From sequence record OQ411014.1: 64,000 nt of DNA, one strand, 5' to 3'. The notes under the pieces were generated by a model. It ran no database searches, was not told the origin of the DNA, and saw only the letters and a program-made list of their open reading frames with translations. This document shows, piece after piece, positions 1 through 64,000 of this stretch; position 1 is the first letter of the stretch, and each line of letters opens with the position of its first letter. Both the position numbers and the translations under genes were made by a program.

Positions 1-1
1 T

Positions 2-232
2 GAACGTGGTACAATCGTTGATAAACTAATTGCAGATGCAGAACAGTATCTACGTCTTCATGAAGAAAATCTTGAACGTGCTTATAACATCGACCCATCT
101 CGTCGTCCAGTAGTTGAAGCGGCTGGTGAAGAAGATGATACCACATTCTCTATCGTTCTTGAGAAAGGCGTTTCCCAAGCGAAAGCAATTGAAATCGTCA
201 AAAAAGCACTAGCAGCACAAAAGGCAAAATAA
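2..232 (+). CDS. 3' end of a hypothetical protein (partial, runs in from the window edge)
   Basis: Open frame from position 2 (ERGTIVDKLIADAEQYLRLHEENLE...KKALAAQKAK) to TAA at 230-232, with phage-typical codons (CTA, CGT); the next ATG follows at 234. Confidence 0.75.
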   Translation, partial: ERGTIVDKLIADAEQYLRLHEENLERAYNIDPSRRPVVEAAGEEDDTTFSIVLEKGVSQAKAIEIVKKALAAQKAK

Positions 233-233
233 T

Positions 234-530
234 ATGACTCGTGATGAAATCATTCAAATGATTCTCACTGAGCGTAATCGTCAAACAGAGAATCCAAACA
301 CTGTTTCTGACTTACACAAAACCAAAAATGATTGGGCTGCTTTGGCAGCCTATTATTTGTTTGAAGGTGCAAGTCGTTCCGATAAACATGTATCTTTCGA
401 AGAGTTTCGTAGTTCTCTAGTTCAAACTGCTGCCGTCATTATTGCAGCACTAGAAACCAGCTATGCTCATGAGAATGAAACGGTTCGAGATTTACTATCT
501 CAACTGGAAAATAAAGATGACAAGCAATGA
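234..530 (+). CDS. Hypothetical protein, possibly a MazG-like all-alpha NTP pyrophosphatase fold
   Basis: 98 aa. The pattern ERNRQ...W...EEFRSSLVQTAAVIIAALE resembles small phage MazG-like proteins, but the usual ExxE acidic cluster is not clear. Confidence 0.4.
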   Translation: MTRDEIIQMILTERNRQTENPNTVSDLHKTKNDWAALAAYYLFEGASRSDKHVSFEEFRSSLVQTAAVIIAALETSYAHENETVRDLLSQLENKDDKQ

Positions 531-1107
531 GTTACAACTTGCTCTTAGTGATCTAGATAATGTATGTTATAGTGGCGGTGCTAAAGGGGCAGACCGCCTC
601 TTTGGTATCTGGGCTACTGAAAATGGTTTTCAAGAAGTACATTTCTCTTTCAAGAAACATAATTATGTTGTAGATGAAAGTACTATCATTGAAATTCCAG
701 ATTCGATTCTACAGGATAGTACTGTAATCGATAAACTCAAGAAAGCGAACTACTCTTTAGGAAGAAGTATTCCAAAGAAAGGTTCTTATGTTTATAATCT
801 ACTTGCACGTAATACGTTTCAAGTTCTTCTTACTGAACGTGTGTATTGCATCAGTCCTTTAGCATCACCAACAACCGTTTCAGGTGGTACAGCATGGGCT
901 GTTCAAATGTACATTGACCAGTACGAGAATCCTGTAATTTACGGTTATGACCCACTTCGGAAAGAAGCATATCAGTACTGTAATACTAAGAAAGAATTCA
1001 TTACAGTTGATTCTGTTCCAGCACCTACTGGTAAATGGACAGGTATTGGTTCACGTGAAACTACAGAGAATCACATGCAAGCATTCGTTAGTTACTTCAG
1101 GAGTTGA
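517..1107 (+). CDS. SLOG-superfamily (DprA/YspA-like) nucleotide-binding protein
   Basis: Motifs SGGAKGAD, SGGTAWAV and GIGSR are typical of SLOG Rossmannoid domains. Start moved to ATG 517, which overlaps the upstream gene. Confidence 0.6.
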   Translation: MTSNELQLALSDLDNVCYSGGAKGADRLFGIWATENGFQEVHFSFKKHNYVVDESTIIEIPDSILQDSTVIDKLKKANYSLGRSIPKKGSYVYNLLARNTFQVLLTERVYCISPLASPTTVSGGTAWAVQMYIDQYENPVIYGYDPLRKEAYQYCNTKKEFITVDSVPAPTGKWTGIGSRETTENHMQAFVSYFRS

Positions 1108-2289: not shown

Positions 2290-2296
2290 TGCCAAA

Positions 2297-4995: not shown

Positions 4996-7900
4996 TTATA
5001 CGTTACGTTGTGCAATAAACACGTCAATGGTAGAACCTACACCGCTGTATACTAACTGACAGATAGATACAGAGTTTGGAGTGGTGTTAATCGCAGTATC
5101 AGCACCAATCACACTATATGGAGGTGGTAGAGTTAGCGAGTGGTTACCAGTTGCGTCTTGTGTTACATATACGAACCAAGAACCTGCATATCCTGGGGTG
5201 ATTGGTAGGTTACCAACGGTAGTATCACCTGTTAGGGTAATGTTATACACGTTAGAAGTACCATCAGGAGTCCAAGTACCAGTTGCAGAAGCAGCCGGAG
5301 CAGCTTTAACTAGGTATTTGCTAGTACTTACCGATTCAGTTACTAGGTCGCCGATATCAGCAGTTAGTGTACCAGTTACTGTTAGGTTGTTAGCATTAAT
5401 TGTACCAGTACTATCAATATCAACAGCAGTTACTTTACCAGTGAAATCGGAGGTTCCAGATACAGTAAGGCTTGTAGCAGTGATTGCACCTGTGGTTACA
5501 GCAGCTAAGGTAGAAGTACCAGTTACTGTTAGAGTATCAGTTTCTAGACCGCCAGTAATTGCAGCACCATCAGCACTAACAGTTAGTTTACCACCAGTAG
5601 TTAGTGTAGTACCTACGCTCGCCGCAGCAGAGAAAGTAGCAGTACCAGTGCTGGATAGAGTACCAGTTACTGTGGTTGCACCAGTAATTGCAGCACCATC
5701 AGCACTAACAGTTAGTTTACCACCAGTAGTTAGTGTAGTACCAACTGTTGCAGCACCAGTAACTTCAAGAGTTACACCTTTCAAGAAGGAAGTGGAAGTA
5801 ACAGATTGTGCAACTAGATCAGAAGTACTTTGGTCTAGTGTACCAATGATACGACCATTAACAGTAAAGTCACCAGTACAAACTGCGTTACCGTTAAGCT
5901 GTAGGTTGTTGTTTACAGAACCACTTGCACCGATAACAGCAGAGTCAATTGTTGCTTGACCTTTAACTTCGAGTGTAGTACCAACAGATACCGCTTGGGA
6001 AGTTGTTACAGACCGTGGAGAAATATCACGACCAGTTAAGTCGATTTGAGCAGTGATAGTACCATCAACATCCAAGTTACCTGTGATGTGGGTGTTACCA
6101 GAAATCTCAGCAATATATTCTTCTTCGTCCCATACTAGAGTACCTACGTGTAGGTTTGTGGTAGAGGTCTTCTTGAAAGAAGCGGTTGCAGTTGCAGCAC
6201 CGTTCTGTGCGATATTACCAGCAGTTACTGTTAGGTCACCAGTAGTAATTGTTGCACCGTTATCAGAAGTTACAGAACCAAATTTACCTGCACCTGAAGC
6301 AGTGATTGCACCACCTAGGGTTGTTGCACCAGTAGTTACGGTTAGACCGTTATCAGAGGTTACAGAACCAAATTTACCTGCACCAGTACTGGTTAGAGTA
6401 CCACCAACAGTTGTGTTGCCAGTTACACCTAGTGTAGTACCAACAGTTGCACCAGCAGCAGTAGAAACACTATTAACAGATAGGTCAGCACCCGCGAGGT
6501 TTAGACCACCAGCAGGAGTGAATGTACCATTAACGGTCATGTCACCAGTTGCTACCGTGTTACCTGTGATATCTAGTGATGCTAGAGTTGCTTTACCTGA
6601 AGTACTTAGAGTACTAACAGATGTTGCATCAGCAGTTACATCAGCTAGGGTAGATGCACCAGTTACATTTAGTGTAGTACCGATATTTGCACTGTTTAGA
6701 GTTGCTAGACCAGAAGTACTTACAGTACTTAGGGAAGTATTACCAGATACACCTAGGGTTGTAGTAACGCTTGCAGCGTTCGCATTGACAGTTCCTAGAG
6801 TAGATACGCCAGTTACTTCTAGAGTAGTGTTAACTTTAGCACCGTTTAGTGTTGCCAAACCAGTAGTCGTTAGTGCATCAGTAGTTACATCAGCTAGGGT
6901 AGATGCACCAGTTACATTTAGAGAACCACCAACAGTTGTGTCGTTAGTACTGGATAGTGTTAGTGCACTTAGGTTAGTTGCACTTAGGTCGAATTGACCA
7001 TCAACAGTCAAATCACCAGTTACATGAGCGTTACCGAGAGAGTTAAGAGACTTAACAGTTACATCAGTTGTGCTTAGGTCGATTGCTCCAGCAGTTAGTG
7101 TACCAGTTGCATGGAAATCACCAGTTACGTTGGTAGATTTAGCAAGTTGTACAGTAGTTCCAGCAGTTGTAAAGGAAGCAGCAGATACAGCACCAGTTGC
7201 GGATACAGATGAAGCACCAATTGCACCAGCAGTTACACCAGCAAGAGTAGTTTCACCAGTTACTGCTAGAGTACCAGAAGCAGTTACATCAGCCAGGGTT
7301 GAAGCGGCAGATACAGTTACAGCACCTAGAGTTGCTTCGTCGCTTGCTAATTTAGGGAATGTATTTGTTTTAGCAGCATCAGTAGATACAAAACTTAAAG
7401 CAGTTACATCAGCACCAGATAAGTCAACAGTACCAGATACAGCTAGGTTGCCACCGATTGTTGCACCTTCAGTAGTCGTAATAGACTTGGAAGCAATATC
7501 AACAGAAGATAGGTCAAAACCACCAACTGGGGTAAATGTCCCATTAACTGTTAGGTTTTTATCAGCAACAACATCACTTGCTAGAGTTACTGTGCCAGCA
7601 CCAAGTGGAGCAGCTTGAACAGTTGCGGATTCTACCGAAGCACCTTTAACAATACCAGTTGCAGTAATGTTTGTTGCAGAGATATCACCAATGGATTCAA
7701 TACCGCCATTAGGCTTGAAAGAACCAGTTACAGTTAAGTCTTTTGCAGCGACTGCATTACTTGCCAATGTTACTGTACCAGCACCAGCAGCAGCACCTTG
7801 AATAGATGGAACAGTTGCAGTTGCAGCACTTACATCACCAGTTGCAGCGAAAGATACAGCACTGATATCACCAGTTGCATCAATATCACCAGCATTTACA

Positions 7901-10605
7901 GTACCAGCAGTGATGGTAGTACTAGATAGAGTTGGGATGGTGCTTTGTGCAACAGTTGCAGTAATAGATTTAACATTAATATCCGCAGCACTTAGGTCGA
8001 ATGTACCGTCAACAACAAGGTTTCCACCAACGTTTACGTTACCTGTAGTGGTTACAGATGCAGCATCAACAGCAGTAGTACTTAGGTCAATTGAAGCTGG
8101 GGTTAGAACACCAGAAATAGTTACGTCATTTGCAAAAGTGGTATTACCAGTAATGCTTGGAACAACTAATGAATCAGCAGTTACTGAAGCTAATGTTGAA
8201 GCACCAGTTACGCTTAGAGATGCAGCAGATGCAGCACCGATTGCAGAAGCACCAGTTACATTTAGAGAACCACCATTAACTTCACCAGTTGCAGTGACAG
8301 AAGCAGCAGTTACAGCACCAGTTGCCGCGACAGATTCAGCAGAAACGCCAGCAGTTGCTACAACAGAGTTCGGTGCGATATCAAGACCGTCAACGTTTGC
8401 AGCAGCAGTTACACCAGTAGTAGTACCAGTTACAACTAGGTCTTTAACAGTTACAGTTTGACCATTAACAGTTACGTTACCACCAATTGTTGCACCAGCA
8501 GTTGCAGTGATTTCACCTGTTACGCCTAGAGTACCACCAACAGTTGCGTTGCCAGTTACAGCAGCGTTACCACCTACAGATAGATCAGTACCAACAGTAG
8601 TGGTGGTTACAGATTCTAGAGTATTACCATTAAGGGCAGCAGTTGCTACAACAGAGTTAGGTGTTAGGTCTTGACCACTAACATCAACAGTTAGACCAGT
8701 TACAACACCAGTAAATTCAACATCAGCAAGAATTGATTTACCATCAACTTTTAGTTGTGGTTGTGCAGTACCGATAGTACTGTTACCTTGGATGTGAACA
8801 TAATCCATAGTGGATTTGCCTAGTGCAGTTAGACCAGCAGTACCACCAACGTTACCAACAGATGCGTTCTGTAGTAGTGCTTTATCAGCTACAAGGTCAG
8901 AAGTTGCGATTTTGTATGGTTCGATGCTGGATTTGGTGTCGCTTGGGCGAGCCGGATCGTTATATGCAAATTGTAAAATACCGTGGTTACCAGATTCGCC
9001 ATCAATAACGTTTAGAGTACTAAAGTTAGCGATTGAAGTTCTTGCACCAGTTAAGTTACCAGATAGAGTTAGGTTTTGTAGAGTACTTGGACCAGAAACA
9101 TTTAGAGATGTTGCATTAATATCAGTAAATGAAAGACCAGATACTGCACCAGTAATAATCAAATCACCAACTGTGGTTTTTTGTAGTACTGTATCACCAG
9201 TTACTTCTAGTTTTGGTGTTGCTTCACCAATAGTACTGTTACCAGTAATGCTTAGGTAATCAATAGTTGCTTTACCTAGTGCTTTTAGACCAGCAGTACC
9301 TGCTACATCACCAACTTCAGCAGCTTTAAGAACAGCTTTGTCAGCTACTAGATCAGAAGTTGCCATTTTGTATGGTTCGATACTTGATTTTGTGTCATTT
9401 GGACGAAGTGTGTCATTATAAGCGAATTGTACAATGCCGTGGTTTCCAGCAGTACCGTCATCAACAGTAAAAGTACTGAAGCGTGCTACTGAAGAGTTAC
9501 CACCAGTTAGGTTGCCACTCATGTTAACGCCAGCTAGAGTTGATGCACCAGATACGTTTAGAGTTGCTACGTTTAGGTCAGTGAATGAAAGACCAGATAC
9601 TGCACCAGTAATTGTTAGGTTACGAACTGTAGTATCTTGTAGTACTGATTTACCAGTTACTTCTAGGAAGTTATCAGCAGTACCAATAGTACTGTTACCA
9701 GCAATTTTTAGGTAATCGATTTTTGCATTACCGAGAGCGTGTAGACCGTGGTCATCGCCACCACCAACAACACCAACGGTTGCTACGTCAGTTTGGATAT
9801 CGTTGGTATCAATTTCTTGAGTACTAACTTTGTACGGCTCAAGGCTAGTTTTGATATCAGAAGGACGTAGTGGGTCGTTATATGTGAACTGAACACTACC
9901 AGTTTGACCGGAAACACGATATTGGTTTACGGATACAGTACTGTTTGCACCAGTTACGTTACCTTGGATAGTAGTTGCACCTTTAATGTTTACGTTGTTA
10001 AGATCACTTAGTGTTTTAACTTCGATGTTATTGAAAGTACCAGCATCCATAGTGTAAGTGCCACTTAGAGTACCATTGATTTCCACATCACCTAGTGTTG
10101 TTTTGCCAGTTACGTCTAGAGTACTGTCAAGTACTGCTGCACCTTTAGCATGTAGGGCTTCAGTAGTTGTACTACCTAGAGCTACAGTACTAGTTGGTTC
10201 AGTAGAAAGATTGCCATTAACTTTTGCATTACCAGATACGGTTAGGCTATCAGCAGAAGTTTCTTTAAATGAAGCACTACCAGTAGTTTGAGTAATATTT
10301 GAATTAAAAGTTGCTTCGGCATCAACAGCCAAAGTACCTTTAACACTTACTGTATCAGTTAGAGCGTCACCAAGAACGGTATTACCAGATACGTTAAGAT
10401 TTCCGAGATTAGAAGTACCAGTACTTGTAATGTCAGCGAATTGAGCAGAACCCGTCACTGTGATAGCAGTGAATGTGGCATCTGCGAAAGAAACAGTGCC
10501 TTCTACAGAAAGATTTTGCTTGAATACAGCATTACCCTTCAATAGTAGGTCTTTGTCAATCGTTGCTCCACCGAGAACGCCTAGATCAGTTTTAATTGAA
10601 TACAT
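4996..10605 (-). CDS. Very long repetitive fibre-like virion protein
   Basis: 1869 aa dominated by T/G/A/V/S beta repeats (LTVTG, LNVSG), with three QF[TA]YND..RP.D.K.S.EPYK units. The C-terminal domain (YNITLTGDTT...YVTQDATGNHSLTLP) is typical of fibre tips. Perfect TATAAATA upstream. Confidence 0.7.
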   Translation of the reverse strand: MYSIKTDLGVLGGATIDKDLLLKGNAVFKQNLSVEGTVSFADATFTAITVTGSAQFADITSTGTSNLGNLNVSGNTVLGDALTDTVSVKGTLAVDAEATFNSNITQTTGSASFKETSADSLTVSGNAKVNGNLSTEPTSTVALGSTTTEALHAKGAAVLDSTLDVTGKTTLGDVEINGTLSGTYTMDAGTFNNIEVKTLSDLNNVNIKGATTIQGNVTGANSTVSVNQYRVSGQTGSVQFTYNDPLRPSDIKTSLEPYKVSTQEIDTNDIQTDVATVGVVGGGDDHGLHALGNAKIDYLKIAGNSTIGTADNFLEVTGKSVLQDTTVRNLTITGAVSGLSFTDLNVATLNVSGASTLAGVNMSGNLTGGNSSVARFSTFTVDDGTAGNHGIVQFAYNDTLRPNDTKSSIEPYKMATSDLVADKAVLKAAEVGDVAGTAGLKALGKATIDYLSITGNSTIGEATPKLEVTGDTVLQKTTVGDLIITGAVSGLSFTDINATSLNVSGPSTLQNLTLSGNLTGARTSIANFSTLNVIDGESGNHGILQFAYNDPARPSDTKSSIEPYKIATSDLVADKALLQNASVGNVGGTAGLTALGKSTMDYVHIQGNSTIGTAQPQLKVDGKSILADVEFTGVVTGLTVDVSGQDLTPNSVVATAALNGNTLESVTTTTVGTDLSVGGNAAVTGNATVGGTLGVTGEITATAGATIGGNVTVNGQTVTVKDLVVTGTTTGVTAAANVDGLDIAPNSVVATAGVSAESVAATGAVTAASVTATGEVNGGSLNVTGASAIGAASAASLSVTGASTLASVTADSLVVPSITGNTTFANDVTISGVLTPASIDLSTTAVDAASVTTTGNVNVGGNLVVDGTFDLSAADINVKSITATVAQSTIPTLSSTTITAGTVNAGDIDATGDISAVSFAATGDVSAATATVPSIQGAAAGAGTVTLASNAVAAKDLTVTGSFKPNGGIESIGDISATNITATGIVKGASVESATVQAAPLGAGTVTLASDVVADKNLTVNGTFTPVGGFDLSSVDIASKSITTTEGATIGGNLAVSGTVDLSGADVTALSFVSTDAAKTNTFPKLASDEATLGAVTVSAASTLADVTASGTLAVTGETTLAGVTAGAIGASSVSATGAVSAASFTTAGTTVQLAKSTNVTGDFHATGTLTAGAIDLSTTDVTVKSLNSLGNAHVTGDLTVDGQFDLSATNLSALTLSSTNDTTVGGSLNVTGASTLADVTTDALTTTGLATLNGAKVNTTLEVTGVSTLGTVNANAASVTTTLGVSGNTSLSTVSTSGLATLNSANIGTTLNVTGASTLADVTADATSVSTLSTSGKATLASLDITGNTVATGDMTVNGTFTPAGGLNLAGADLSVNSVSTAAGATVGTTLGVTGNTTVGGTLTSTGAGKFGSVTSDNGLTVTTGATTLGGAITASGAGKFGSVTSDNGATITTGDLTVTAGNIAQNGAATATASFKKTSTTNLHVGTLVWDEEEYIAEISGNTHITGNLDVDGTITAQIDLTGRDISPRSVTTSQAVSVGTTLEVKGQATIDSAVIGASGSVNNNLQLNGNAVCTGDFTVNGRIIGTLDQSTSDLVAQSVTSTSFLKGVTLEVTGAATVGTTLTTGGKLTVSADGAAITGATTVTGTLSSTGTATFSAAASVGTTLTTGGKLTVSADGAAITGGLETDTLTVTGTSTLAAVTTGAITATSLTVSGTSDFTGKVTAVDIDSTGTINANNLTVTGTLTADIGDLVTESVSTSKYLVKAAPAASATGTWTPDGTSNVYNITLTGDTTVGNLPITPGYAGSWFVYVTQDATGNHSLTLPPPYSVIGADTAINTTPNSVSICQLVYSGVGSTIDVFIAQRNV
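5552..5742. repeat. 62-bp exact direct repeat (5552-5613 and 5681-5742) inside the fibre gene
   Basis: ccagtaattgcagcaccatcagcactaacagttagtttaccaccagtagttagtgtagtacc occurs twice, 129 bp (43 codons) apart. Confidence 0.9.
6257..6384. repeat. 38-bp near-exact direct repeat (6257-6294 and 6347-6384)
   Basis: ccgttatcaga(a/g)gttacagaaccaaatttacctgcacc, 90 bp apart, encoding GAGKFGSVTSDNG twice. Confidence 0.85.
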
Positions 10606-46470: not shown

Positions 46471-46500
46471 ATGAGATGCAAACATAAAATGTGATATAAT
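46471..46500 (+). promoter_or_regulatory. Early/middle sigma70-like promoter with no downstream protein gene
   Basis: ATGAGA-N18-TATAAT (TGTGATATAAT), matching the clpA, gp55 and dsbA promoters. Confidence 0.7.
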
Positions 46501-46506
46501 ATAAGT

Positions 46507-46950
46507 ACAAGTTCATAAGGTCAGTTTTTACTGATACAGATTAAACCCAATTCACTCGAAAATGTAGAGGATGGATGAGTAGACTTATGACTACGTAGTG
46601 CAAAAGAAACCCGTTAGGAGATGGCATAGTTTGTACCACCCACGGCAATGTGGCACTTTAAATGAACGCGATAAGCAGACAGACGTTCACTAGATAGACA
46701 TATAAGGCTACCTTACCACACTTGCTAAGGGAGTTCAGTTCAGAACTTGTTTTGAGCTTGAACAGCATTAAGATTCGATTGTATGGATTTTAATGTATGC
46801 GTACTAAGACTACGACCGTTGCACATGACCGTGATAGAGAGAAACAGAGCAACCCGCTTTCGTTCTGACTTGTTCAGAAATTCACGATACAATAATTCCG
46901 ATGCTATCAGCGTCAAGCAATATTTCAGATCCTTAATTGGGTCTTTTTTA
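46507..46950 (+). ncRNA. Candidate structured non-coding RNA (~440 nt), family unrecognised
   Basis: Bounded by the conserved promoter and a terminator-like gatcc-ttaatt-gggtc-tttttt; several hairpins found by eye (46734-46762, 46765-46796, 46865-46879); no convincing ORF. Confidence 0.45.
46927..46950 (+). terminator. Probable terminator of the non-coding transcript
   Basis: agatcc-ttaatt-gggtct followed by a T-tract. Confidence 0.6.
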
Positions 46951-47179
46951 TTGTCTTCATTCCCCTGCGGGGGGATGAAATTGCCTCAACAAATCTCGTC
47001 AAGTATTAAAGTATTAATTAGTTCTTAATAATTAAATTATTAAATGAATTGAGATTCATTAGAGTGAAACGAAGTGAACGATAAATGAATTGAAGATTCT
47101 TAGACAATCGAAGATTGGCTAATCAAATACTTTCTCCTAAAGAATGATTCAATAATAATTCTTAATGAATTTTAAATAC

Positions 47180-47205
47180 AAAAAAAACCAGCAACAATGT
47201 GCTGG
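47180..47205 (-). terminator. Terminator after the gp26/gp51-like pair
   Basis: Minus strand reads ccagca-cattgt-tgctgg-tttttttt. Confidence 0.8.
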
Positions 47206-47415
47206 CTATTGATTCATTTTCTTCATTCTTTTGTTATACGACTTCACCATTAAATCCCTTGTCTGTACTGGCATATTCAGTAATGACTCATAGGAAGTGT
47301 TCTCTATAGCAACAGCAGCATCCATCAATGACACCTGAATGTCATTGACATTAAACTCCATATCACTTAGAATCTCTTTTATTTCTTCCGGTTCACTAAT
47401 GAGAAGTCTAGTCCG
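47206..47415 (-). CDS. Short gp51-like ORF in the -1 frame of the gp26-like gene (probable frameshift extension)
   Basis: RTRLLISEPEEIKEIL...YESLLNMPVQTRDLMVKSY resembles short ORFs that follow gp26 in T4-like phages; the frame is open from the slippery T-TTT-TTC. Confidence 0.55.
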   Translation of the reverse strand, partial: RTRLLISEPEEIKEILSDMEFNVNDIQVSLMDAAVAIENTSYESLLNMPVQTRDLMVKSYNKRMKKMNQ

Positions 47416-50506: not shown

Positions 50507-52261
50507 ATGAGTAGTTGGAAACGACATATGACCACCGCCCGTTCTAAAGTTTCAACAACCAAACAGGAACAGGCAAAAAACAAATCAGGATTGGAAACAT
50601 CAGGTTCTAAATCTAACTTTGCTTCATATCTCCCAGTGGTATACACTGGGTTACCAAACCGTACTGATAGATATCGTCAGTACGATCAAATGGACCAAGA
50701 CCCTGAAATCCGAACCGCATTAAACATCATTGCTGACTTTTGTACTCAAAGTACTGAAGATTTTGGCCTACCATTTAAGATTAAGTATAGAGATAACATT
50801 GGTGATACTGAAGTTACTACTCTTGAAGACCGTCTTGAATCATGGGCTGACCAGAATGATTTTAAAACCAGAATGTATGAAATTGTTCGTGGTCTATTAA
50901 AGTATGGCGACCAATTCTTTATCCGTGACCCAGAAACATTTGACTGGTACTGGGTAAACCCAATGAACGTAGAGCAGGTATTCGTAAACGAAGCTACTGG
51001 TAAGAACCCAGTTGTTTATTATATCCGTGACGTATCATTGAACCTACATGATAAAGTATTTTCTAACTTACAAATTGGTTTTGACCGTATGACATATCCT
51101 GGTGCAGTACCGAACGGTATGAACACTAACAGTAATATGTTTAGTAACAGTTCTGGTGGTGGATATGGTAACAGTGCAAACAGTGCTGACCCATTCAACA
51201 CAAATGGACGTATGGATATTATCCCAGTTGCCGCAGAACACGTTATTCACTTAACATTAAATACTGGACAAGATGGTGTATGGCCTTTCGGTACTAGTAT
51301 CTTAGAAGATGTGTTTAAAGTTTATAAACAAAAAGAACTTCTTGAAGATAGTATCATTATCTATCGTGTACAACGTGCTCCAGAACGTCGTGTATTTAAA
51401 ATTGACGTTGGTGATATGCAAATACCACAAGCAATGGCACACGTAGAGCGTATCAAGAATGAAATCCACCAGCGTCGTATACCTTCCAATAAAGGTGGCA
51501 GTACTTCATTAATGGATGCAGCGTATAACCCACTTAGTATTCTAGAAGACTACTTCTTCCCACAAACATCTGAAGGTCGTGGTTCATCTGTTGAAACTCT
51601 TCCTGGTGGTGATAACCTAGGTCAGATTGATGACTTGCGTTACTTCAATGATAAATTGATTCGTGGCTTACAGATTCCATCTTCTTATCTACCAATGGGG
51701 CCAAGTTCTGATGGTGGCGTTTCCTTATTTGGTGACGGTGCTACTCAAGCTATGGCAAGTGAATTACGCTTTAACAACCAATGTATGCGTTATCAACGTT
51801 TGGTTGCACGTGTATTTGATAAAGAATTCAAACGTTATATGATTTACAATGGTTATACTATTAGTGATTCTTCGTTTGAAGTGATTTTCAATCCACCAAT
51901 CAACCTAGCGTCTTATCGTCGTGCTGAACTTGATGCTCGTCTAATTAACACTTATCTACCACTAAATGACATTCCATACATTGCGAAACAAACCATTCTT
52001 AATAAGATGGGCTTTGACCAAGGTGAAATTGTCAAGAACGAACAGCTATGGATTCAAGAAAATCCAGATGCATTTGACGGTACTGGTGCTAATCCAGATG
52101 GTGAAGAAGAAGCAGGTCTTGCGTCAGTAGGTATTAATGCACCAAACGATGCTGGTACTGATTTAGGTATTGATGATGATGGAAATCTAGAAAGTGCCGA
52201 TGCGAAGTTCCAGGACATGCAAGCGGATTTTAACCCTAATACATTAGGCGATTCTTTCTAA
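50507..52261 (+). CDS. gp20: Portal protein, T4 gp20-like
   Basis: YRQYDQMDQDPEIRTALNII, LLEDSIIIYRVQRAPERRVFKIDVG, LEDYFFPQTSEGRGSSVETLPGGDNLGQIDDLRYF. Confidence 0.95.
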   Translation: MSSWKRHMTTARSKVSTTKQEQAKNKSGLETSGSKSNFASYLPVVYTGLPNRTDRYRQYDQMDQDPEIRTALNIIADFCTQSTEDFGLPFKIKYRDNIGDTEVTTLEDRLESWADQNDFKTRMYEIVRGLLKYGDQFFIRDPETFDWYWVNPMNVEQVFVNEATGKNPVVYYIRDVSLNLHDKVFSNLQIGFDRMTYPGAVPNGMNTNSNMFSNSSGGGYGNSANSADPFNTNGRMDIIPVAAEHVIHLTLNTGQDGVWPFGTSILEDVFKVYKQKELLEDSIIIYRVQRAPERRVFKIDVGDMQIPQAMAHVERIKNEIHQRRIPSNKGGSTSLMDAAYNPLSILEDYFFPQTSEGRGSSVETLPGGDNLGQIDDLRYFNDKLIRGLQIPSSYLPMGPSSDGGVSLFGDGATQAMASELRFNNQCMRYQRLVARVFDKEFKRYMIYNGYTISDSSFEVIFNPPINLASYRRAELDARLINTYLPLNDIPYIAKQTILNKMGFDQGEIVKNEQLWIQENPDAFDGTGANPDGEEEAGLASVGINAPNDAGTDLGIDDDGNLESADAKFQDMQADFNPNTLGDSF

Positions 52262-52326
52262 GAATAAATAACTATGATTAGATAATTCACCCCTTCAGTG
52301 GGGTGAATAACATTTAGGAGTGAACA

Positions 52327-52557
52327 ATGTTAGATGAAATCTTTGAATCAAGAGACGATTCTATGTACGACCCTGAAGATGATCAGACTGTTTATAAACT
52401 AACTGATACCAGAAAACCTAAATTGACGCTTCAGATTTTAAATAATCTAAGAAAATATCGTGAATTTAAGAAGAATGAAGAGGCACGTCGTGCTTCTGTT
52501 GTATCTGTTGTGTATGCAACACCATCTGAACCATCCGGTGGAAGTGGAATGATGTAA
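52327..52557 (+). CDS. Small prohead core-like protein (gp67/gp68 position)
   Basis: 76 aa with RBS aggag, between the portal and prohead genes. Confidence 0.55.
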   Translation: MLDEIFESRDDSMYDPEDDQTVYKLTDTRKPKLTLQILNNLRKYREFKKNEEARRASVVSVVYATPSEPSGGSGMM

Positions 52558-52560
52558 AAG

Positions 52561-52597
52561 AGCGATTTTAAACCCCTTTTAAAAATCGCTTTTTTTA
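52561..52597 (+). terminator. Terminator-like hairpin
   Basis: agcgatttt...aaaaatcgct followed by a T-tract. Confidence 0.6.
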
Positions 52598-52602
52598 AAA
52601 AG

Positions 52603-52610
52603 TATAAATA
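52603..52610 (+). promoter_or_regulatory. T4-type late promoter TATAAATA
   Basis: Exact consensus upstream of the acidic core protein gene. Confidence 0.75.
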
Positions 52611-52655
52611 ATCACATACTGAAATATAAAATTTTGTATATCTTTGGAGGATATC

Positions 52656-53525
52656 ATGGCAAACAAAAAATTACTACAAGAAGCTATTCAGGCTTTTGCA
52701 AATGGTGAACACGCTGTTGCTGATAAAAAACTACGTAAATATTTTATCGAAACCGCTCAAGAAATTAACAAGAAACTAGAAGAAGAAATGGAAGCGGAAG
52801 AGTGTGAAGAAATCTCTGAAGCGGAAGAAGTAGAAGACTGTGAAGAAGTCGTTGCTGAAGACATTCATTCTGGTCAATCAGAAGATCTAACTGGTGAAAT
52901 TCAATATGCACTAGGTGAAGCTGAAGACGAAGAAGTTGAAGCTGGCGAAGAAGAAATTGGTATCGACGGTGACGAAGAAGTTGCTGGCGAAGAAGAAGTT
53001 GAAGTTGAGTCTGGTGACCTACCAACTCAAGACCAATGGGCTTCCATTAAAGATGCAATTGATTCTCTAAGCAAGCGTTTCGATGAAATCGAAGGCGAAG
53101 GCGACATTGACCTAGATGTTGAAGGTGATGATGTTGGTGATGAAGAAGAAATTTCCGATTTCGAAATTGACGATGCAGGTGAAGAAGAATTTGGTGATGT
53201 ACAGTTCGGTGATGAGAAATTTGGCGAATCTTACAAAATGAAACCAGTTTCTAAACCAGGTAACGATGCAGCTAAATCTAAATCTCCAGTTGCACCAAAC
53301 GCTAAATCTCCAGTAGACGGCGTTGACCCAGTTAAGATCAAAGATGGTAACGTTGTTACTAACGATGGCGAACTTCTAAAAAATAAAGATGCTGACACTG
53401 CTAAAGTGGAAGACATGAACAACGTTATGGATAATGCTAAAGGTCTAATGAAAGACGTTAAGAAACCAGCTAATAAAGCTGACAAATCTAAGTCTGTAGT
53501 TCCATCAAAAGCACCAAAGTTCTAA
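52656..53525 (+). CDS. Highly acidic prohead core / internal scaffold protein
   Basis: Start at ATG 52656 (RBS ggagg); Glu/Asp-rich middle and Lys/Pro-rich tail; head-module position. Confidence 0.65.
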   Translation: MANKKLLQEAIQAFANGEHAVADKKLRKYFIETAQEINKKLEEEMEAEECEEISEAEEVEDCEEVVAEDIHSGQSEDLTGEIQYALGEAEDEEVEAGEEEIGIDGDEEVAGEEEVEVESGDLPTQDQWASIKDAIDSLSKRFDEIEGEGDIDLDVEGDDVGDEEEISDFEIDDAGEEEFGDVQFGDEKFGESYKMKPVSKPGNDAAKSKSPVAPNAKSPVDGVDPVKIKDGNVVTNDGELLKNKDADTAKVEDMNNVMDNAKGLMKDVKKPANKADKSKSVVPSKAPKF

Positions 53526-53559
53526 TCATAAATAATATAAAGAAAGGAGATCATTAATT

Positions 53560-54183
53560 ATGAACATGATAAGAGAGTGGTCTTCATTCAGTGATTCGAA
53601 CATTGTACTTGAATATCAAGAAAACAAATTAGGCGGTAAGGATTGCTACCTTCGTGGTATTGCAATCCAAGCCGATAAACGAAACCTGAACGAACGTATC
53701 TACCCACTAAATGAAATTGCTCATGCTGTTGAAGTTATGCAACAACGTCTGCAACGTGGTGAGAGCATTCTTGTTGAATGTGACCACCCAGAAACACTAA
53801 CTATTAACTTAGACCGAGTTGCAGCCAAAATTACGAAAGTATGGATGGAAGGTCACAATGGTATGGCAGAAATTAAACTTCTACCAACCTCACATGGCAA
53901 AAACATTCGGGCTATGCTCGAAGCAGGTGTAAAATTGGGTGTAAGCTCACGTGGTTCTGGTAACGTTGACCATAACGGTATCGTATCAGATTTCGAAATT
54001 GTTACTATTGATATTGTTGCTCAACCAAGTGCTCCAGATGCTTATCCAGAAGCAGTATTTGAGTCTCTAAACTATAAGTACGGTTCACCTGCTAACGGAA
54101 GAAAATCTATCGTTGAAAACAAGAAAGTTCCTACTTCAGTAGAAAACGAAATTCACGATTTTTTCAAGAAATTAAAAGGTTAA
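53560..54183 (+). CDS. gp21: Prohead protease, T4 gp21-like
   Basis: LRGIAIQADKRNLNERIYP, ECDHPE, LGVSSRGSG and DIVAQPSAPDAY. Confidence 0.95.
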   Translation: MNMIREWSSFSDSNIVLEYQENKLGGKDCYLRGIAIQADKRNLNERIYPLNEIAHAVEVMQQRLQRGESILVECDHPETLTINLDRVAAKITKVWMEGHNGMAEIKLLPTSHGKNIRAMLEAGVKLGVSSRGSGNVDHNGIVSDFEIVTIDIVAQPSAPDAYPEAVFESLNYKYGSPANGRKSIVENKKVPTSVENEIHDFFKKLKG

Positions 54184-54194
54184 AAAAAATTTTT

Positions 54195-54202
54195 TATAAA
54201 TA
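54195..54202 (+). promoter_or_regulatory. T4-type late promoter TATAAATA
   Basis: Exact consensus upstream of the gp22-like gene. Confidence 0.75.
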
Positions 54203-54255
54203 TTTGTACATCAAAAGTGCTAATATTTAAAAAGTACTTTAAAGGAGAACAAACA

Positions 54256-55454: not shown

Positions 55455-56630
55455 ATGTCACAACTATTAACTGAATCTAAATGGGCACAAGTTAAGAGCA
55501 AACTAACCGAAGGTCTAAAAGACAACCGTAAACTAGTAATGGAATCTGTTCTAGAAAACCATCGTAAAGTAATGCTAAACGAAAACGCTTCTGGCGGTGC
55601 AACTTCTGCTGGTAACATTGCTACCCTAAACAAAGTAATTCTACCAATCATGCGTCGTGTAATGCCAACCGTTATCGCTAACGAAATCATCGGTGTTCAA
55701 CCAATGTCTGGCCCAGTTGGTCAAATCCATACCCTACGTGTTCAATATGCTGATAACGCACCAGGCGTTGTAGCTGGTGAAGAAATGCTATCCCCATACA
55801 AAATCGCTAAGTCCTATACTGGTGATGTGAATGGCGATAACGAAAATCCACGTGCTGCTCCTACTAGTCAACTAGAAGGTACTATGGGTCGTCGCGTTAA
55901 CATCCGTATCCTACGTGAAACCGTTGAAGCGAAATCTCGTCGTCTATCCGCTCGTTGGACTGTTGAATCTGCACAAGATGCACAATCTCAACACGGTATC
56001 GATATCGAAGCTGAACTAATGGCTGCTATCGCTCAAGAAGTTACTACTGAAATCGACCAAGAGCTACTACACAAACTACGTGCTCTACCTGGTGCTGCTG
56101 CTGTAACTTATGACCAATCCAAAGTTACTGGTGTTGCTACTTTCGTTGGTGATGAACATGCTGCTCTAGCTACTCTAATCAACCGTCAAGCGAACGAAGT
56201 TGCTCGTCGTACCAAACGTGGTGCTGCAAACTGGGCTGTTGTTTCCCCAACCGCACTAACCATTCTACAGTCTGCAACTACTTCTAGCTTTGCTCGTACC
56301 ACCGAAGGTACTTTCGAAGCACCAACTAACGTTAAGTTTGTTGGCGTACTAAACAGTACTATGCGTATCTATGTTGATACCTATGCAGATGACAGTACTG
56401 ATGTACTAATCGGTTACAAAGGTAATGCTGAAACTGATGCTGGCGTGTTCTACTGCCCGTACATCCCACTAATGGCTTCCGGTACTGTAATGGACCCTAA
56501 CACTGGGGAACTCGTAACAACATTCTTAACCAGATATGGCTACGTACAGTTGACCGACAGTACCAGTTCTCTTGGTAACGCGGCTGACTACTACAGCAAA
56601 ATTGCTATCCGCAACGTAACCTTCATGTAA
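55455..56630 (+). CDS. gp23: Major capsid protein, T4 gp23-like
   Basis: Start at ATG 55455 (RBS taaggag); ILPIMRRVMP..IANEIIGVQPMSGPVGQI, KSRRLSARWTVESAQD, EIDQE and FYCPYIPL...RYG; strong codon bias. Confidence 0.96.
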   Translation: MSQLLTESKWAQVKSKLTEGLKDNRKLVMESVLENHRKVMLNENASGGATSAGNIATLNKVILPIMRRVMPTVIANEIIGVQPMSGPVGQIHTLRVQYADNAPGVVAGEEMLSPYKIAKSYTGDVNGDNENPRAAPTSQLEGTMGRRVNIRILRETVEAKSRRLSARWTVESAQDAQSQHGIDIEAELMAAIAQEVTTEIDQELLHKLRALPGAAAVTYDQSKVTGVATFVGDEHAALATLINRQANEVARRTKRGAANWAVVSPTALTILQSATTSSFARTTEGTFEAPTNVKFVGVLNSTMRIYVDTYADDSTDVLIGYKGNAETDAGVFYCPYIPLMASGTVMDPNTGELVTTFLTRYGYVQLTDSTSSLGNAADYYSKIAIRNVTFM

Positions 56631-58276: not shown

Positions 58277-58582
58277 ATGCAAATATGTTACGTAATCACC
58301 AATAAAGCATGGCCTGAGTGGGTAAAAATTGGATTCACATCTAAATCAGAGATGAAATCCAGACTAAGTACATACCAGACGGGTTCACCATTTAGAGATT
58401 ATGAAGTATATCATGAAGTACTATTTGATGATGCGAAATCCGCTGAAAAAGAAGTACATAAGCGTTTAAAACAAATGAATGCAACTAGATCACCAGGGAC
58501 TGAGTGGTTTAAAATGAGTAAAAAAATAGCAGCCAATATGATTGATTCAGTTCTAGATGATATAGAGAACGACTTGCTATAA
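58277..58582 (+). CDS. T5orf172/MUG113-like (GIY-YIG superfamily) single-domain protein
   Basis: ICYVITN...WVKIGFT...RLSTYQTGSP.RDY...AEKEVHKRL...EWF. Confidence 0.8.
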   Translation: MQICYVITNKAWPEWVKIGFTSKSEMKSRLSTYQTGSPFRDYEVYHEVLFDDAKSAEKEVHKRLKQMNATRSPGTEWFKMSKKIAANMIDSVLDDIENDLL

Positions 58583-60956: not shown

Positions 60957-61256
60957 ATGGCTAAGAAACTCGAAAACAAAGTTGAACTACACGATCTAAA
61001 CGATGAACAACGTAAACGTCTAGGTGACGGCTTGACAAATGCTGTAGTTCAGCTAACATACCATAAGAGTGTAAAAGAGTCTTACAAAGAGTTTATCAAC
61101 AGCCTAGCTGATGAACTTGGTATTGATGCTGGAACTATTCGTGCAGCAGCAGCCCGTATGGAAAAAGGTGATTTCTTCGAGAAGGTTCGTAAGCAAGATG
61201 AAATCGAAACTATGCTACAAATCACTGGTAATCTACCAGCAGAAGATGACGAGTAA
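60957..61256 (+). CDS. dsbA: Small dsDNA-binding protein, T4 DsbA-like
   Basis: 99 aa; YKEFINSLADELGIDAG...RMEKGDF...DEIETM parallels the DsbA helical pattern; RBS ggag. Confidence 0.55.
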   Translation: MAKKLENKVELHDLNDEQRKRLGDGLTNAVVQLTYHKSVKESYKEFINSLADELGIDAGTIRAAAARMEKGDFFEKVRKQDEIETMLQITGNLPAEDDE

Positions 61257-61270
61257 TAACAAGTAACTAT

Positions 61271-61300
61271 AAGCCTCCAAATGATTGGGGGCTTTTATTT
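61271..61300 (+). terminator. Terminator-like hairpin between dsbA and DNA polymerase
   Basis: aagcctccaa-atga-ttgggggctt-ttatttt. Confidence 0.7.
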
Positions 61301-61338
61301 TGCATTAAGTTTATCGTTTATTTTATAAGGAGATAAGT

Positions 61339-64000
61339 ATGTACGTAGATGGATATATGGAACGTAAGCGTGGTTCAGAAGTTCTTCACGTAGCTGAACG
61401 TGTCAATGGTAAACGTGTACTACGAGAACTAGATCCAGTGTACGAGTACTATGTTGAGTCACCGTACGGTACACAAAAGACAATTCACGGAACTATGGCT
61501 GAGAAGTTTGAGTTCAGTACATATCGTGATATGAAAGCATCCCTAGAGCGTCACGCCGGATGCAAAATCTTTGAATCTGACTGTAACGTCACCTTCAAAA
61601 CACTAGCTAAACGTTATATGGGTAAAGCATCACCAGACCTGAACGTATTGTTCTTCGATATCGAGACAGACTTTCATGAAAAGTTTGGTTATGCACCAAC
61701 ACATGATCCATTCAACCGTGTAACTGCAATTTCTCTGTATCAAAGTTGGACTGGTTGTGATTATGTTCTAACACTACCACCTGCAAGTATGAGTCTTATC
61801 CAGGCACAAGAAATTGTGAATGAACTCAACGCAGAGACTAATGATGAAAACAGTAAAGTAATTCTTTACACTGACGAAAAAGAGATGTTCATCGAATTCT
61901 TCTCTCTAATGCAGGACGCAGATGTATTGTCCGGCTGGAACAGTGAGTTCTATGATATTCCTTACATGATCAACCGTACTAAGAAGCTATTCAATGAAGC
62001 AATGTTGGCTCATTGGTGTCTTTGGAACAAAAAACCTGTTTCCCGTGAAGCTGATAACTTTGGTAAAGTTGTTGTTACATATGACCTAGTAGGTCGTGTA
62101 CACCTTGACTACTTAGCACTTTACAAGAAACACGCCGGACAAGTTGAACAGTCCTATCGTCTAGATGATATTGCTGAGAAAGTAACTGGCGAAAACAAAG
62201 TTGCATACGATGGTTCTTTGAACAAACTATACAACGAAGATTACAAAATGTTCTTACGATATTCTAAGCAGGATAGTATCCTACTGAAGAAAATTGATGA
62301 GAAGATGGACTTCATCAGTCTACATAACCGACTAGCTCATAAAGAATGTGTACTAATCAGTACTACAATGGGTTCGGTAGCACTAATCGACACATCTATC
62401 ATCAACAAAGCACACAAACGTGGTGAAGTAGTTTTTGATAAGAAGAATCAGGACGAAGTTGAAGTTGATGATCGTTATGATTTTATGGGTGACGATAATG
62501 ATGATGGTGAAGAAGAGAAAGTAGCAGCAAAAGCAGCGGGTGCATGGGTACAAGATCCAGTACTGGGTTTAGTTGACTTCTTAGGATGTACTGACTTTAA
62601 CAGTCTATATCCAACAGTTCTTCGTTCACTAGGTATGAGTACTGAATGTATTATCGGGCAATTGCGTCATGATTATACTGAAGCACACCTTGAGAAACGT
62701 GTTGCAGACCAACGTGCTAAATCTAAATCCAAAGCATTTGAACCGGATTGGACAGCAGCATGGCATGGTTTGTTTGCTAGTATTGAGTTCACAATGGTTC
62801 GTGAGAAATCACAAAGCCTAATCAATGTTGATTTGGAAGATGGTAGTACTTTCCAAGCAACTGGTGAACAACTATATGAACTAATCTTTGCTGAAGATAG
62901 TACTATTGTTCTTTCCGCTAACGGAACACTATTTGATAAAACCAAAAATGGTGTAATCCCAGAGATCCTTACTGAATGGTACTCTGAGCGTAAATGTCAG
63001 CAGAAGATGGTCATCGATTATAAACACATGTACAGTGACGGTTGGGAATTGCCTTCATCTTCTCTTGACAAGATTGAAGCTGCTATGCAAAACTACACAG
63101 CAGGTACAGAATTTTACCGTACTAACTTACATGATGATGACCCAGTATATCTCCTACGTATTGCACTAACTAATGCAAACTATGAAGATGTAGCTAAACT
63201 TGTGGTTGAGAACGGTCTAGTACTGAAAGATGGTCGTCTATTCTGTAAGAAAGAAGATAAAGACTACTTCAAGAAACAAAGTGCGTTCTGGAAACAGAAC
63301 CAGCAGATTCGTAAGATTCTTCTGAACTCCCTCTATGGTGCACTACTAAACAAAGGTTCTCGTTTCTTTGATAAGCGTCTAGGTCAGTCTGTAACCCTAA
63401 CAGGTCGTAGTATGACTAAACACATGGCATCTCGTATCAATGAGATTGTTACTGGTGAATACAACCACGAAGGTGGATGTGTAATCTATGGTGATACCGA
63501 CTCCGTATATTTCAGTGTTGCTCACTATATGAAAGAACAAGGTTTTGAATTCAACCTAAACCGTACTGAAGTAGTTGATTTGTATGTCAAGATTGGTGAT
63601 GAAATGGGTGAAAACTTCTATGAATTCATGAATGATAGCTTCAACACTGGTATTGAGAAAGGTAAATTGGTTGGTGCAGATCTTGAGATGGTTGGTTCAC
63701 GCGGACTATTCCTGAAGAAGAAGCGTTATGCTATTCTGAAGTACTGGGAAGATGGTTTCCGTAAAGATGAAAATGGTGAAGTTGGTGAAATCAAAGCGAT
63801 GGGATTGGAAATCAAACGTTCCGATACACCTAAGTACATCCAGAACTTCCTACAAAGTACTTTGATTGCACTACTTGTTGGTGAATCCGAAGATGAACTT
63901 CGTGCTCGTGTTCGTGAATTCAAATGTACATTCAAGGATAAACCATCACATGAGAAAGGTGCTCCACGTACAGTGAAGAAGTACACTCATCACGAGGAAG
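61339..64000 (+). CDS. gp43: Family B DNA polymerase, T4 gp43-like (5' part, runs off the window)
   Basis: ATG 61339 with RBS aaggag. My translation gives ExoI DIETD, ExoII WNSEFYD, ExoIII YSKQD, motif A DFNSLYP, motif B RKILLNSLYG, motif C YGDTDS and KKKRY; no stop before 64000. Confidence 0.95.
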   Translation, partial: MYVDGYMERKRGSEVLHVAERVNGKRVLRELDPVYEYYVESPYGTQKTIHGTMAEKFEFSTYRDMKASLERHAGCKIFESDCNVTFKTLAKRYMGKASPDLNVLFFDIETDFHEKFGYAPTHDPFNRVTAISLYQSWTGCDYVLTLPPASMSLIQAQEIVNELNAETNDENSKVILYTDEKEMFIEFFSLMQDADVLSGWNSEFYDIPYMINRTKKLFNEAMLAHWCLWNKKPVSREADNFGKVVVTYDLVGRVHLDYLALYKKHAGQVEQSYRLDDIAEKVTGENKVAYDGSLNKLYNEDYKMFLRYSKQDSILLKKIDEKMDFISLHNRLAHKECVLISTTMGSVALIDTSIINKAHKRGEVVFDKKNQDEVEVDDRYDFMGDDNDDGEEEKVAAKAAGAWVQDPVLGLVDFLGCTDFNSLYPTVLRSLGMSTECIIGQLRHDYTEAHLEKRVADQRAKSKSKAFEPDWTAAWHGLFASIEFTMVREKSQSLINVDLEDGSTFQATGEQLYELIFAEDSTIVLSANGTLFDKTKNGVIPEILTEWYSERKCQQKMVIDYKHMYSDGWELPSSSLDKIEAAMQNYTAGTEFYRTNLHDDDPVYLLRIALTNANYEDVAKLVVENGLVLKDGRLFCKKEDKDYFKKQSAFWKQNQQIRKILLNSLYGALLNKGSRFFDKRLGQSVTLTGRSMTKHMASRINEIVTGEYNHEGGCVIYGDTDSVYFSVAHYMKEQGFEFNLNRTEVVDLYVKIGDEMGENFYEFMNDSFNTGIEKGKLVGADLEMVGSRGLFLKKKRYAILKYWEDGFRKDENGEVGEIKAMGLEIKRSDTPKYIQNFLQSTLIALLVGESEDELRARVREFKCTFKDKPSHEKGAPRTVKKYTHHEE

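Follow-up and report, generated by a model that had tools for sequence, protein, structure and literature searches.

AGTACT, an iterated palindrome of Escherichia phage EJP2 and its relatives, as a possible recognition site of a phage-encoded DNA reader

Iterated palindromes such as the highly iterated palindrome HIP1 (GCGATCGC) of cyanobacteria have been known for about 30 years and, to our knowledge, have no established function. The element considered here is the hexamer AGTACT in a 64,000-bp stretch of DNA (the window), which is completely identical in sequence to positions 124001-188000 of Escherichia phage EJP2 (OQ411014.1, 349,185 bp), an E. coli phage of the genus Asteriusvirus and a RaK2/121Q-like jumbo myovirus. 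A first-pass annotation of the window had named HIP1 as the closest precedent, and the comparison is apt, since the two words have the same statistical behavior. Like HIP1, the phage motif is an 8-bp palindrome (CAGTACTG) with a 6-bp core, is enriched by one to two orders of magnitude, recurs about once per few hundred bp in coding DNA (in all frames) as well as in non-coding DNA, is held at synonymous sites, and has its single-nucleotide deviations at the outermost positions; in both cases, orphan methyltransferases are encoded in the genome. However, the phage motif is AT-rich and has another sequence than either GCGATCGC or a GC-rich alternative HIP. In addition, AGTACT is found in a virus that otherwise eliminates palindromes, is also located within a class of promoters, and has no demonstrated methyltransferase that recognizes it.

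A second parallel is the Dam/GATC system of E. coli, to which SeqA and MutH belong, together with the pac site of phage P1, which depends on Dam. There also, a palindrome is present every ~200-270 bp, sites are clustered at helical-turn distances in regulatory DNA, and replication state may be linked to promoters or packaging. In contrast to AGTACT, which is enriched about 11-fold to reach this density, GATC does not occur above chance; moreover, methylation of AGTACT is only putative, and the proteins scanned include no SeqA or MutH homologue. The uptake signal sequences (USS) of Pasteurellaceae, the DNA uptake sequences (DUS) of Neisseria, and Chi are similarly short, dense self-recognition words with turnover of positions and a location in less constrained protein parts. 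Unlike AGTACT, they are non-palindromic (and Chi is strand-oriented), are cellular, and are read by uptake or RecBCD machinery. A strand or orientation bias of the kind known for Chi, FtsK-orienting polar sequences (KOPS), or USS words is absent, since AGTACT and its flanks are palindromic. The motif lacks the defining features of SlmA sites, Chi, USS, and repeat-element families, and is outside all of these.

Restriction-site avoidance is a further point of comparison, because AGTACT is a type II site (ScaI/Eco255I). About 27 of the 64 palindromic hexamers have only 0-2 copies in the 349 kb of EJP2, and several are completely absent (AAGCTT, with 116 copies expected; GGTACC; CAGCTG; and GGATCC). 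GCGC is also wholly missing (441 expected), and EcoRI and EcoRV sites are not avoided. The avoidance of restriction sites is thus very strong, and yet one restriction-type site has been multiplied 11-fold; in PA5oct and XacN1, in contrast, AGTACT is itself depleted. This contradicts the usual view that phages only lose restriction-type palindromes, as ~27 of them and GCGC have been deleted while one has been multiplied. Therefore, either the site is protected, or its benefit exceeds the risk from ScaI/Eco255I-type enzymes.

The favored explanation, which is held tentatively, is that AGTACT (the core of CAGTACTG) is the recognition site of a symmetric, dimeric DNA reader encoded by the phage, and that it is selected at a genome-wide density. 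The excess acts at the DNA level and not at that of protein or codon usage. The first-pass annotation had similarly suggested that a phage-encoded system may use the hexamer; use at the DNA level by a system of the phage lineage is supported, whereas the functions that it listed (methyl-directed repair or self-marking, binding of a packaging or nucleoid protein, or recombination) are candidates. No mention of the motif was found in the papers on the EJP2 and RaK2 genomes, in a comparative study of jumbo phages, in a survey of restriction avoidance, or in a full-text literature search. A HIP1-type signal is here present in a culturable E. coli phage, and it is made testable by a sharp phylogenetic on/off boundary, just two candidate methyltransferases, and a direct tie to one promoter class. 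The density of AGTACT also predicts how the DNA of these therapeutic-candidate phages will behave in ScaI and RsaI digestion, and the motif flags a probable regulator of early host-takeover genes.

Abundance and extended form of the palindrome

The enrichment is spread over the entire window:
1-64000, no strand: dispersed AGTACT field with 175 sites, for which counts, shuffles, and frame analysis were made

These sites amount to 2.7 per kb, and 173 of them are within annotated coding sequences, on both strands. Dinucleotide-preserving shuffles of the window had a mean of 25.2 sites (sd 5.6, maximum 44), and the expectation for the window is ~21-25. AGTACT ranks first among all hexamers both in the window and in the whole EJP2 genome, where its 1,312 copies (3.76 per kb, or one per 266 bp) represent 11.3 times the compositional expectation. 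The over-representation reported in the first-pass annotation is thus confirmed and is stronger than was stated there. Every AGTACT coordinate that it cited exists, and the ~35 sites that it had counted by eye in the first ~11 kb are actually 38. A comparison with related hexamers and with codon- and dipeptide-aware shuffles had also been proposed. AGTACA (23 copies) and TGTACT (33) are without similar enrichment and, together with AGTACG (17), are near expectation; AGTACC has 60 copies. In the codon-aware shuffles, the ratio is not near 1: when the proteins and the codon usage of each gene were kept, synonymous-codon shuffles had 42.5 ± 5.7 sites (maximum 60), and when dinucleotides were kept as well, 56.0 ± 5.6 (maximum 67), vs 173 observed coding sites. 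About half of the raw 8-fold excess in the window is due to amino-acid and codon composition, and a 3-4-fold excess remains at the synonymous level.

Synonymous bias towards the word is present in all three frames, the sites are in genes on both strands, and non-coding DNA is enriched as well, as had been claimed from inspection. For instance, Ser-Thr dipeptides in the window are encoded as AGT-ACT in 109 of 167 cases, where 30 are expected. A Tyr between NAG and Tnn is encoded by TAC 17 times and by TAT twice (the background for TAC is 35%). Similarly, Val-Leu following a codon with final A is written GTA-CTN in 47 of 63 cases, and the dicodon GTA-CTG occurs 32 times vs 2.8 expected, even though CTG is a rare Leu codon.

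It is extremely improbable that the excess is a by-product of composition, of codon-pair or tRNA adaptation, or of the avoidance of many other words. AGT and ACT are favored codons, the phage encodes tRNA-Ser(ACU), tRNA-Ser(GCU), and tRNA-Thr(UGU), and twice as many copies are expected from codon and amino-acid usage alone, all of which would fit such an origin. However, the shuffled counts (42-56 vs 173), the out-of-frame synonymous bias with its choice of the rare CTG, the non-coding enrichment, the symmetric flanks, and the lack of similar enrichment in neighboring words do not, and an artefact of composition, codon pairs, or tRNAs is refuted by the shuffles, the frame bias, and the non-coding enrichment.

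The unit extends beyond the hexamer. In the window, AGTACT has C at position -1 in 43% of cases and G at +6 in 46%, so that the extended motif reads c-a-GTAC-t-g around a GTAC core; these flanks prolong the palindrome, and the word with its preferred flanks is fully palindromic. Together with the recruitment of GTA-CTG, this flank composition indicates that the unit is the 8-bp palindrome CAGTACTG, which has 425 copies in the EJP2 genome vs ~4 expected (~100-fold) and 38 in the window vs <1 expected. The hexamer named at first was therefore right as the core, but the true motif is longer. Single-nucleotide variants of the 8-mer have observed/expected ratios (O/E) of 7.5-20 at positions 1/8, 4-9 at positions 2/7, and 1.6-4.4 at positions 3-6, and no single-nucleotide neighbor of CAGTACTG is depleted in the EJP2 genome. 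Such graded tolerance fits the recognition matrix of a protein and does not fit repair that converts one particular neighbor. Very-short-patch-type conversion of one neighbor was rejected because no neighbor is depleted.

When the whole EJP2 genome was divided with a crude mask of open reading frames (ORFs), AGTACT had 5.6 copies per kb in non-coding and 3.55 in coding DNA. Spacing of the sites is Poisson-like overall (coefficient of variation 0.98). Outside the early gene arrays at the genome ends, spacings of 9-11 bp are over-represented (25 vs 12 expected) and those of 12-16 bp under-represented (8 vs 20 expected). No longer conserved repeat unit surrounds the sites, as the top 12-mers in the window occur just 3-4 times. 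A longer repeat or mobile element family was therefore rejected; only ~20 early-promoter cassettes outside the window are repeats.

Distribution, conservation, and turnover of sites

Relatives' genomes were sampled as pieces of 20-50 kb, and AGTACT enrichment is common to all Enterobacterales-infecting RaK2/121Q-like relatives sampled. Hallingskeid (Erwinia), Munch (Salmonella), BF (Serratia), WPEC3 (Escherichia), RaK2 (Klebsiella), and GAP32 (Cronobacter), at 46-50 kb each, have an O/E of ~4.5-8.4, no GCGC, and 23-31 absent palindromic hexamers; the lack of GCGC accompanies AGTACT enrichment in each enriched cultured relative sampled. The early region of PBECO4 has an O/E of 19. In distant relatives the word is instead depleted, with 3 copies vs 16.6 expected in PA5oct (Pseudomonas) and none vs 12.6 expected in XacN1 (Xanthomonas). 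A similar boundary is present among 28 capsid-anchored loci of uncultivated viruses from IMG/VR. All 17 loci with a capsid protein at least 91% identical are enriched 3.2-6.5-fold and are without GCGC, whereas 10 loci with a capsid protein at most 68% identical have an O/E of 0-1.3. No different hyper-abundant palindrome was found in the sister lineages (PA5oct, XacN1, and the 28 loci). In one locus (IMGVR_UViG_3300027985_000435), the capsid protein is 73% identical and AGTACT is enriched 2.4-fold, but 18 GCGC sites are still present, and this intermediate virus may be in transition between these two kinds of genome.

Phages of the same host, rV5 and phAPEC8, are unenriched (O/E 0.8 and 0.4) and share some early small genes with EJP2. 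A single 50-kb sample of E. coli K-12, which also has one GATC per 208 bp, contains 3 AGTACT vs 11.6 expected. On the basis of this one host sample, AGTACT is ~60 times denser in the phage, and its density separates phage from host DNA. The trait is that of a single phage lineage, and neither the host nor E. coli phages in general have it, since PA5oct and XacN1, rV5 and phAPEC8, and the host sample are all unenriched. A generic E. coli host effect is ruled out by rV5 and phAPEC8.

These comparisons also bear on the idea that a host (Enterobacterales) protein reads the motif and is exploited or titrated by the phage, for example the nucleoid-occlusion factor SlmA. The SlmA site is a 12-bp palindrome, GTGAGTACTCAC, with AGTACT at its core and GT and AC outermost. 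Both this shared core and the exact match of the enriched clade to Enterobacterales hosts would agree with a host factor. Nevertheless, such a factor is very unlikely: E. coli phages rV5 and phAPEC8 are unenriched, the one host sample under-represents AGTACT, GTGAGTACTCAC has 0 copies and GTNAGTACTNAC 2 copies in 349 kb, and no flank combination is rarer than GAGTACTC (11 of 1,312). SlmA-binding sites were rejected on the counts of GTGAGTACTCAC and GTNAGTACTNAC and on the rarity of these G/C flanks.

The maintenance of sites was examined in codon alignments of 9,400-10,000 codons between EJP2 and its relatives. Hallingskeid shares 50% of EJP2 sites, against a background hexamer identity of 25%. 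Munch, BF, and WPEC3, with ~67-69% nucleotide identity over aligned codons, share 9-33% (background 13-18%), and the totals per genome are similar. At unshared sites, the relative mostly has another amino-acid pair. Where Ser-Thr pairs are conserved, however, the relative has AGT-ACT in ~75-85% of cases, irrespective of the codons in EJP2. Over a shorter distance, between WPEC3 and G17 (86% identity), 50 of 74 sites are conserved (68%), compared with 41.5% for hexamers of the same wobble pattern, and in-frame AGT-ACT is conserved in 28 of 35 cases; sites are thus conserved over the short term, a point that the first-pass annotation had proposed to test in relatives. Most losses between these two phages are G2>A or C5>T changes, and AATATT recurs as a symmetric double change. 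Existing sites are protected from substitution (purifying selection), and new sites keep arising, some at the expense of an altered amino acid. Since sites are protected and yet their positions turn over, the maintained quantity is density.

Such turnover would also be produced by molecular drive, in which individually functionless sites accumulate through biased mismatch repair or gene conversion (as proposed for HIP1) or through biased packaging or recombination (as for uptake sequences), so that near-cognate words are turned into AGTACT wherever constraint permits. Totals are kept while positions change, conserved Ser-Thr pairs become AGT-ACT independently in each lineage, sites are fewest in the most constrained genes, and, as in HIP1, single-nucleotide deviations are at the outer positions; these phages also encode a full recombination apparatus (UvsX, UvsY, gp46/47, and endonuclease VII). 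However, no single-nucleotide neighbor has become rare in the way that CTWGG has in E. coli through very-short-patch repair. Outside the early arrays, the density in non-coding DNA does not exceed that in coding DNA (1.9-4.8 vs 2.7-4.8 per kb), and early promoters are ~4 times denser than other non-coding DNA. Molecular drive is an unlikely explanation and, as it still needs a sequence-specific protein, it overlaps with the favored one of a phage-encoded reader.

Early promoters and candidate proteins

A further level of organization of the word is found outside the window, in the two early gene arrays. A spacing of 11 bp occurs 26 times vs ~5 expected, which is the sole anomalous spacing genome-wide, and 20 of these 26 pairs belong to one intergenic cassette at both ends of EJP2 (1-9 kb and 338-349 kb). 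The cassette, aaaAGTAC-TTGCAy-AGTACTG-N9-TATAAT-gtttta, is followed by a hairpin in the 5' untranslated region (5'-UTR) and then by a ribosome-binding site, and from its sequence it reads as a strong sigma70-type promoter with the -35 element bracketed by two AGTACT. In other cassettes, AGTACT directly follows TTGACA, flanks the spacer in two copies ~22 bp apart, or abuts the -10 element, so that promoter site pairs are 11 bp or 20-23 bp apart, at one or two helical turns. Non-coding DNA has 12.9-13.6 AGTACT per kb at the early ends and 1.9-4.8 elsewhere, where it is not above coding DNA (2.7-4.8). AGTACT is present at -43 to -7 in 32 of 38 sigma70-like matches at the early ends and in 7 of 53 elsewhere, where promoters are consensus matches and not mapped transcription starts, and where the 32 are not independent events because the cassette copies are paralogues. 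Related arrangements are present in other members of the lineage. PBECO4 early promoters are of the AGTAC-TTGCAA and TTGACA-N9-AGTACTG-TATAAT types, and in RaK2, the most divergent enriched relative sampled, AGTACT is present in 9 of 11 such promoters. In the annotation of relatives, the early region is a direct terminal repeat. No match to the exact cassette was found in IMG/VR.

Several further features of these arrays were observed. About 40 small early genes are arrayed at the EJP2 ends (338-349 kb and 1-9 kb), most with a near-identical cassette that includes an A-tract, and the hairpin GCGGGAA-N3-TTCCCGC is conserved among the 5'-UTRs. Some of the small genes occur also in rV5-like and phi92-like phages. 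In addition, an annotated RpoD-like sigma factor (EJP2 289759-290751) has sigma70 regions 2 and 3 only, with region 4 undetectable, and it may therefore not read a -35 element.

These arrays resemble the early regions of SPO1 and the T4-type promoter early stem-loop (PeSL) elements, in which small early genes each have a strong host-type promoter, and the hairpin after each EJP2 early promoter adds to the likeness with PeSLs; a genome-wide iterated palindrome has not been reported for PeSLs. SPO1 encodes TF1, which has a preference for phage DNA and binds early promoters in the terminal redundancy. Unlike what is proposed for EJP2, discrimination in SPO1 depends on hydroxymethyluracil and not on a sequence word, and no TF1-like protein was identified among the EJP2 proteins scanned.

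By analogy, the reader might be a non-enzymatic phage DNA-binding protein of nucleoid or repressor type that acts without methylation, organizing phage DNA and repressing early promoters as it accumulates. Since the site is ~60 times denser than in the host, such a protein would coat phage DNA selectively. It is consistent with the positions of sites in early promoters, which are like those of operators and include pairs on one face of the helix, with the matrix-like tolerance of variants, with the spacings outside the early ends (9-11 bp in excess and 12-16 bp too rare), with the strong density contrast between phage and host, and with the location of early genes in direct terminal repeats (as annotated in relatives). 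However, the 39 proteins scanned include no candidate. More than 1,000 tight intragenic sites would block transcription and replication unless binding to single sites is weak, and cytosine modification also fits the repeated losses by G2>A and C5>T and the AATATT change. This explanation is possible but somewhat doubtful.

The favored explanation of a dimeric, phage-encoded reader may also be given in an enzymatic form, for which EJP2 has exactly two DNA methyltransferase-like proteins:
EJP02_076: 172 amino acids, Pfam Dam (PF05869), NPPY motif, N6A-type, orphan
EJP02_365: 285 amino acids, C5 methyltransferase (PF00145), orphan

A genome search for a methyltransferase, as had been suggested in the first-pass annotation, thus yielded two orphan enzymes, but neither is tied to AGTACT. 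There is no further amino-methyltransferase, since the [DNS]PP[YFWH] motif is present in EJP02_076 only among all EJP2 ORFs. Full-length homologues of EJP02_076 are found in ~72 phage records, approximately the size of the clade (73 records), and among the matches listed all of them are RaK2-like phages; in its full-length form, the enzyme thus seems to be restricted to the clade. Ordinary phage Dam enzymes align to residues 8-126 only, the protein scores under the NCBIfam equivalog cut-off, and it has no homologue of solved structure. A pattern-based methyltransferase scan of IMG/VR returned three close contigs only and is uninformative for a phyletic profile. At EJP2 38014-39064, the Dam-family gene overlaps a cytidylyltransferase-like gene (PF01467), which always follows it, and the pair is conserved in relatives; together, the two could be a modification module and not a plain methylase.

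The C5 enzyme is a poor candidate, because EJP02_365-type enzymes are also present in phi92-like phages and ICP1 and because 5-methylcytosine in RaK2 DNA was reported in CpG context from bisulfite data (PMC3622015). It is unlikely to be the AGTACT methylase, since phi92-like phages have it and yet phAPEC8, the single member of that subfamily sampled, is unenriched.

Under the favored explanation, the dispersed sites would label phage DNA as self and draw the reader to it rather than to host DNA, and the promoter sites would be operators at which the same reader, or the methylation state that it creates, switches off early genes. In a private Dam-like system, an orphan methyltransferase (candidate EJP02_076) would mark AGTACT, and methylated DNA would be told apart from newly replicated DNA at promoters and along the genome. 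This version is preferred because one site per 266 bp is close to the density of GATC, and a hexamer needs approximately the observed enrichment to reach it; such a system is nevertheless somewhat to rather doubtful. The complete epigenetic cycle is rather doubtful: the parental genome would be fully marked and its progeny un- or half-marked, and the reader would shut off early promoters at replication and discriminate phage from host DNA, which would serve repair, organization, or packaging. If true, this would be the first HIP-type iterated palindrome with an assignable function, in a genetically tractable E. coli system.

In addition to the reservations on the promoter counts, several points weigh against a dedicated, and in particular a methylating, reader. 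Nothing connects either methyltransferase with AGTACT. RNA methylation was suggested in a comparative study (PMC7824862) for a small DAM family of jumbo phages in subgroup 2.2, and this family may include EJP02_076; the 5-methylcytosine reported in RaK2 is in CpG. Pfam scans of 39 of the 540 proteins (30 hypothetical proteins of the replication module and 9 others) detected no SeqA, MutH, helix-turn-helix, or HU domain; they brought up just a RecB/Cas4-like PD-(D/E)XK protein and, in the window, a small T5orf172 protein. The GenBank annotation of EJP2 also has no SeqA or MutH homologue. The location of AGTACT within the promoter is variable, which could also result if an unconstrained spacer were simply exposed to general pressure for the motif. 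No significant long-range helical periodicity (10.5 bp) was found among the dispersed sites (p = 0.17), and the need of a repressor for more than 1,000 intragenic sites is not obvious.

Local features of the window and other genome-wide words

The window includes genes for thymidylate synthase, very large virion proteins, the baseplate, gp46/gp47, and endonuclease VII, a head module from portal to capsid, and the start of the DNA polymerase gene. Within it, the following features are distinguished by the number or arrangement of their sites:
6601-6729, minus strand: two site pairs, each 9 bp apart (6601/6610 and 6715/6724), with 114 bp between pairs
20874-30887, minus strand: gene for a 3337-amino-acid virion protein, 33 sites (3.3 per kb)
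43569-45713, plus strand: gp46-like (Rad50/SbcC-like) gene, 10 sites (4.7 per kb)
46219-47378: gene-poor 1.1-kb stretch, flanked by the genes for endonuclease VII and a baseplate-hub protein
46264-46464, no strand: densest cluster, six AGTACT in ~200 bp at the edge of the gene-poor stretch
51506-54232, plus strand: longest AGTACT-free stretch of the genome (2,733 bp), with the last part of the portal gene and the genes for prohead core, protease, and scaffold
56355-56399, plus strand: Ser-Thr encoded in frame as AGT-ACT at two places of the major capsid gene (55455-56630)

The pairs at 6601-6729 are located in the gene of a 1869-amino-acid protein (4996-10605) that has 25 AGTACT sites and 41 Ser-Thr dipeptides. 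In the gp46-like gene, where 9 sites had been counted by eye and 10 are present, two pairs are about one helical turn apart (43634/43644 and 45014/45023). The two capsid sites, at 56355 and 56394, are in-frame AGT-ACT as originally described, even though Ser in this gene is mostly TCT/TCC (17 of 26). Conserved, highly expressed head genes have the fewest sites.

No longer repeat unit joins the sites of the cluster at 46264-46464, and only weak promoter-like matches were found there; no Rfam family was matched in the window. The gene-poor stretch around it has two small annotated ORFs (EJP02_244 and EJP02_245), which are doubtful. It also includes terminator-like hairpins at 46927-46944 and 47186-47207 and an AT-rich block with 23-nt direct repeats at 47041-47104, and relatives have either a gap or unrelated small ORFs at the equivalent position. 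Between the capsid and tail-fibre genes, within the module of late structural genes, a T5orf172/GIY-YIG-like protein of 101 amino acids (58277-58582) is conserved clade-wide; it is annotated as a homing endonuclease in relatives and is a candidate DNA-binding or nicking protein.

Two further genome-wide observations concern other words and the tRNAs. The Chi octamer GCTGGTGG occurs 27 times on the plus strand of EJP2 vs ~1.7 expected and 10 times on the minus strand vs 1.35 (expectations from composition only), and this excess may reflect codon usage, as GCT-GGT-GG in Gly-rich proteins. A tRNA-Ser(ACU) at EJP2 267102-267191 has an unusual anticodon that exactly matches AGU, and EJP2 also encodes tRNA-Ser(GCU), tRNA-Ser(UGA), tRNA-Thr(UGU), tRNA-Arg(UCU), and tRNA-Met. 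This set may be adapted to the AGU/ACN load arising from the motif.

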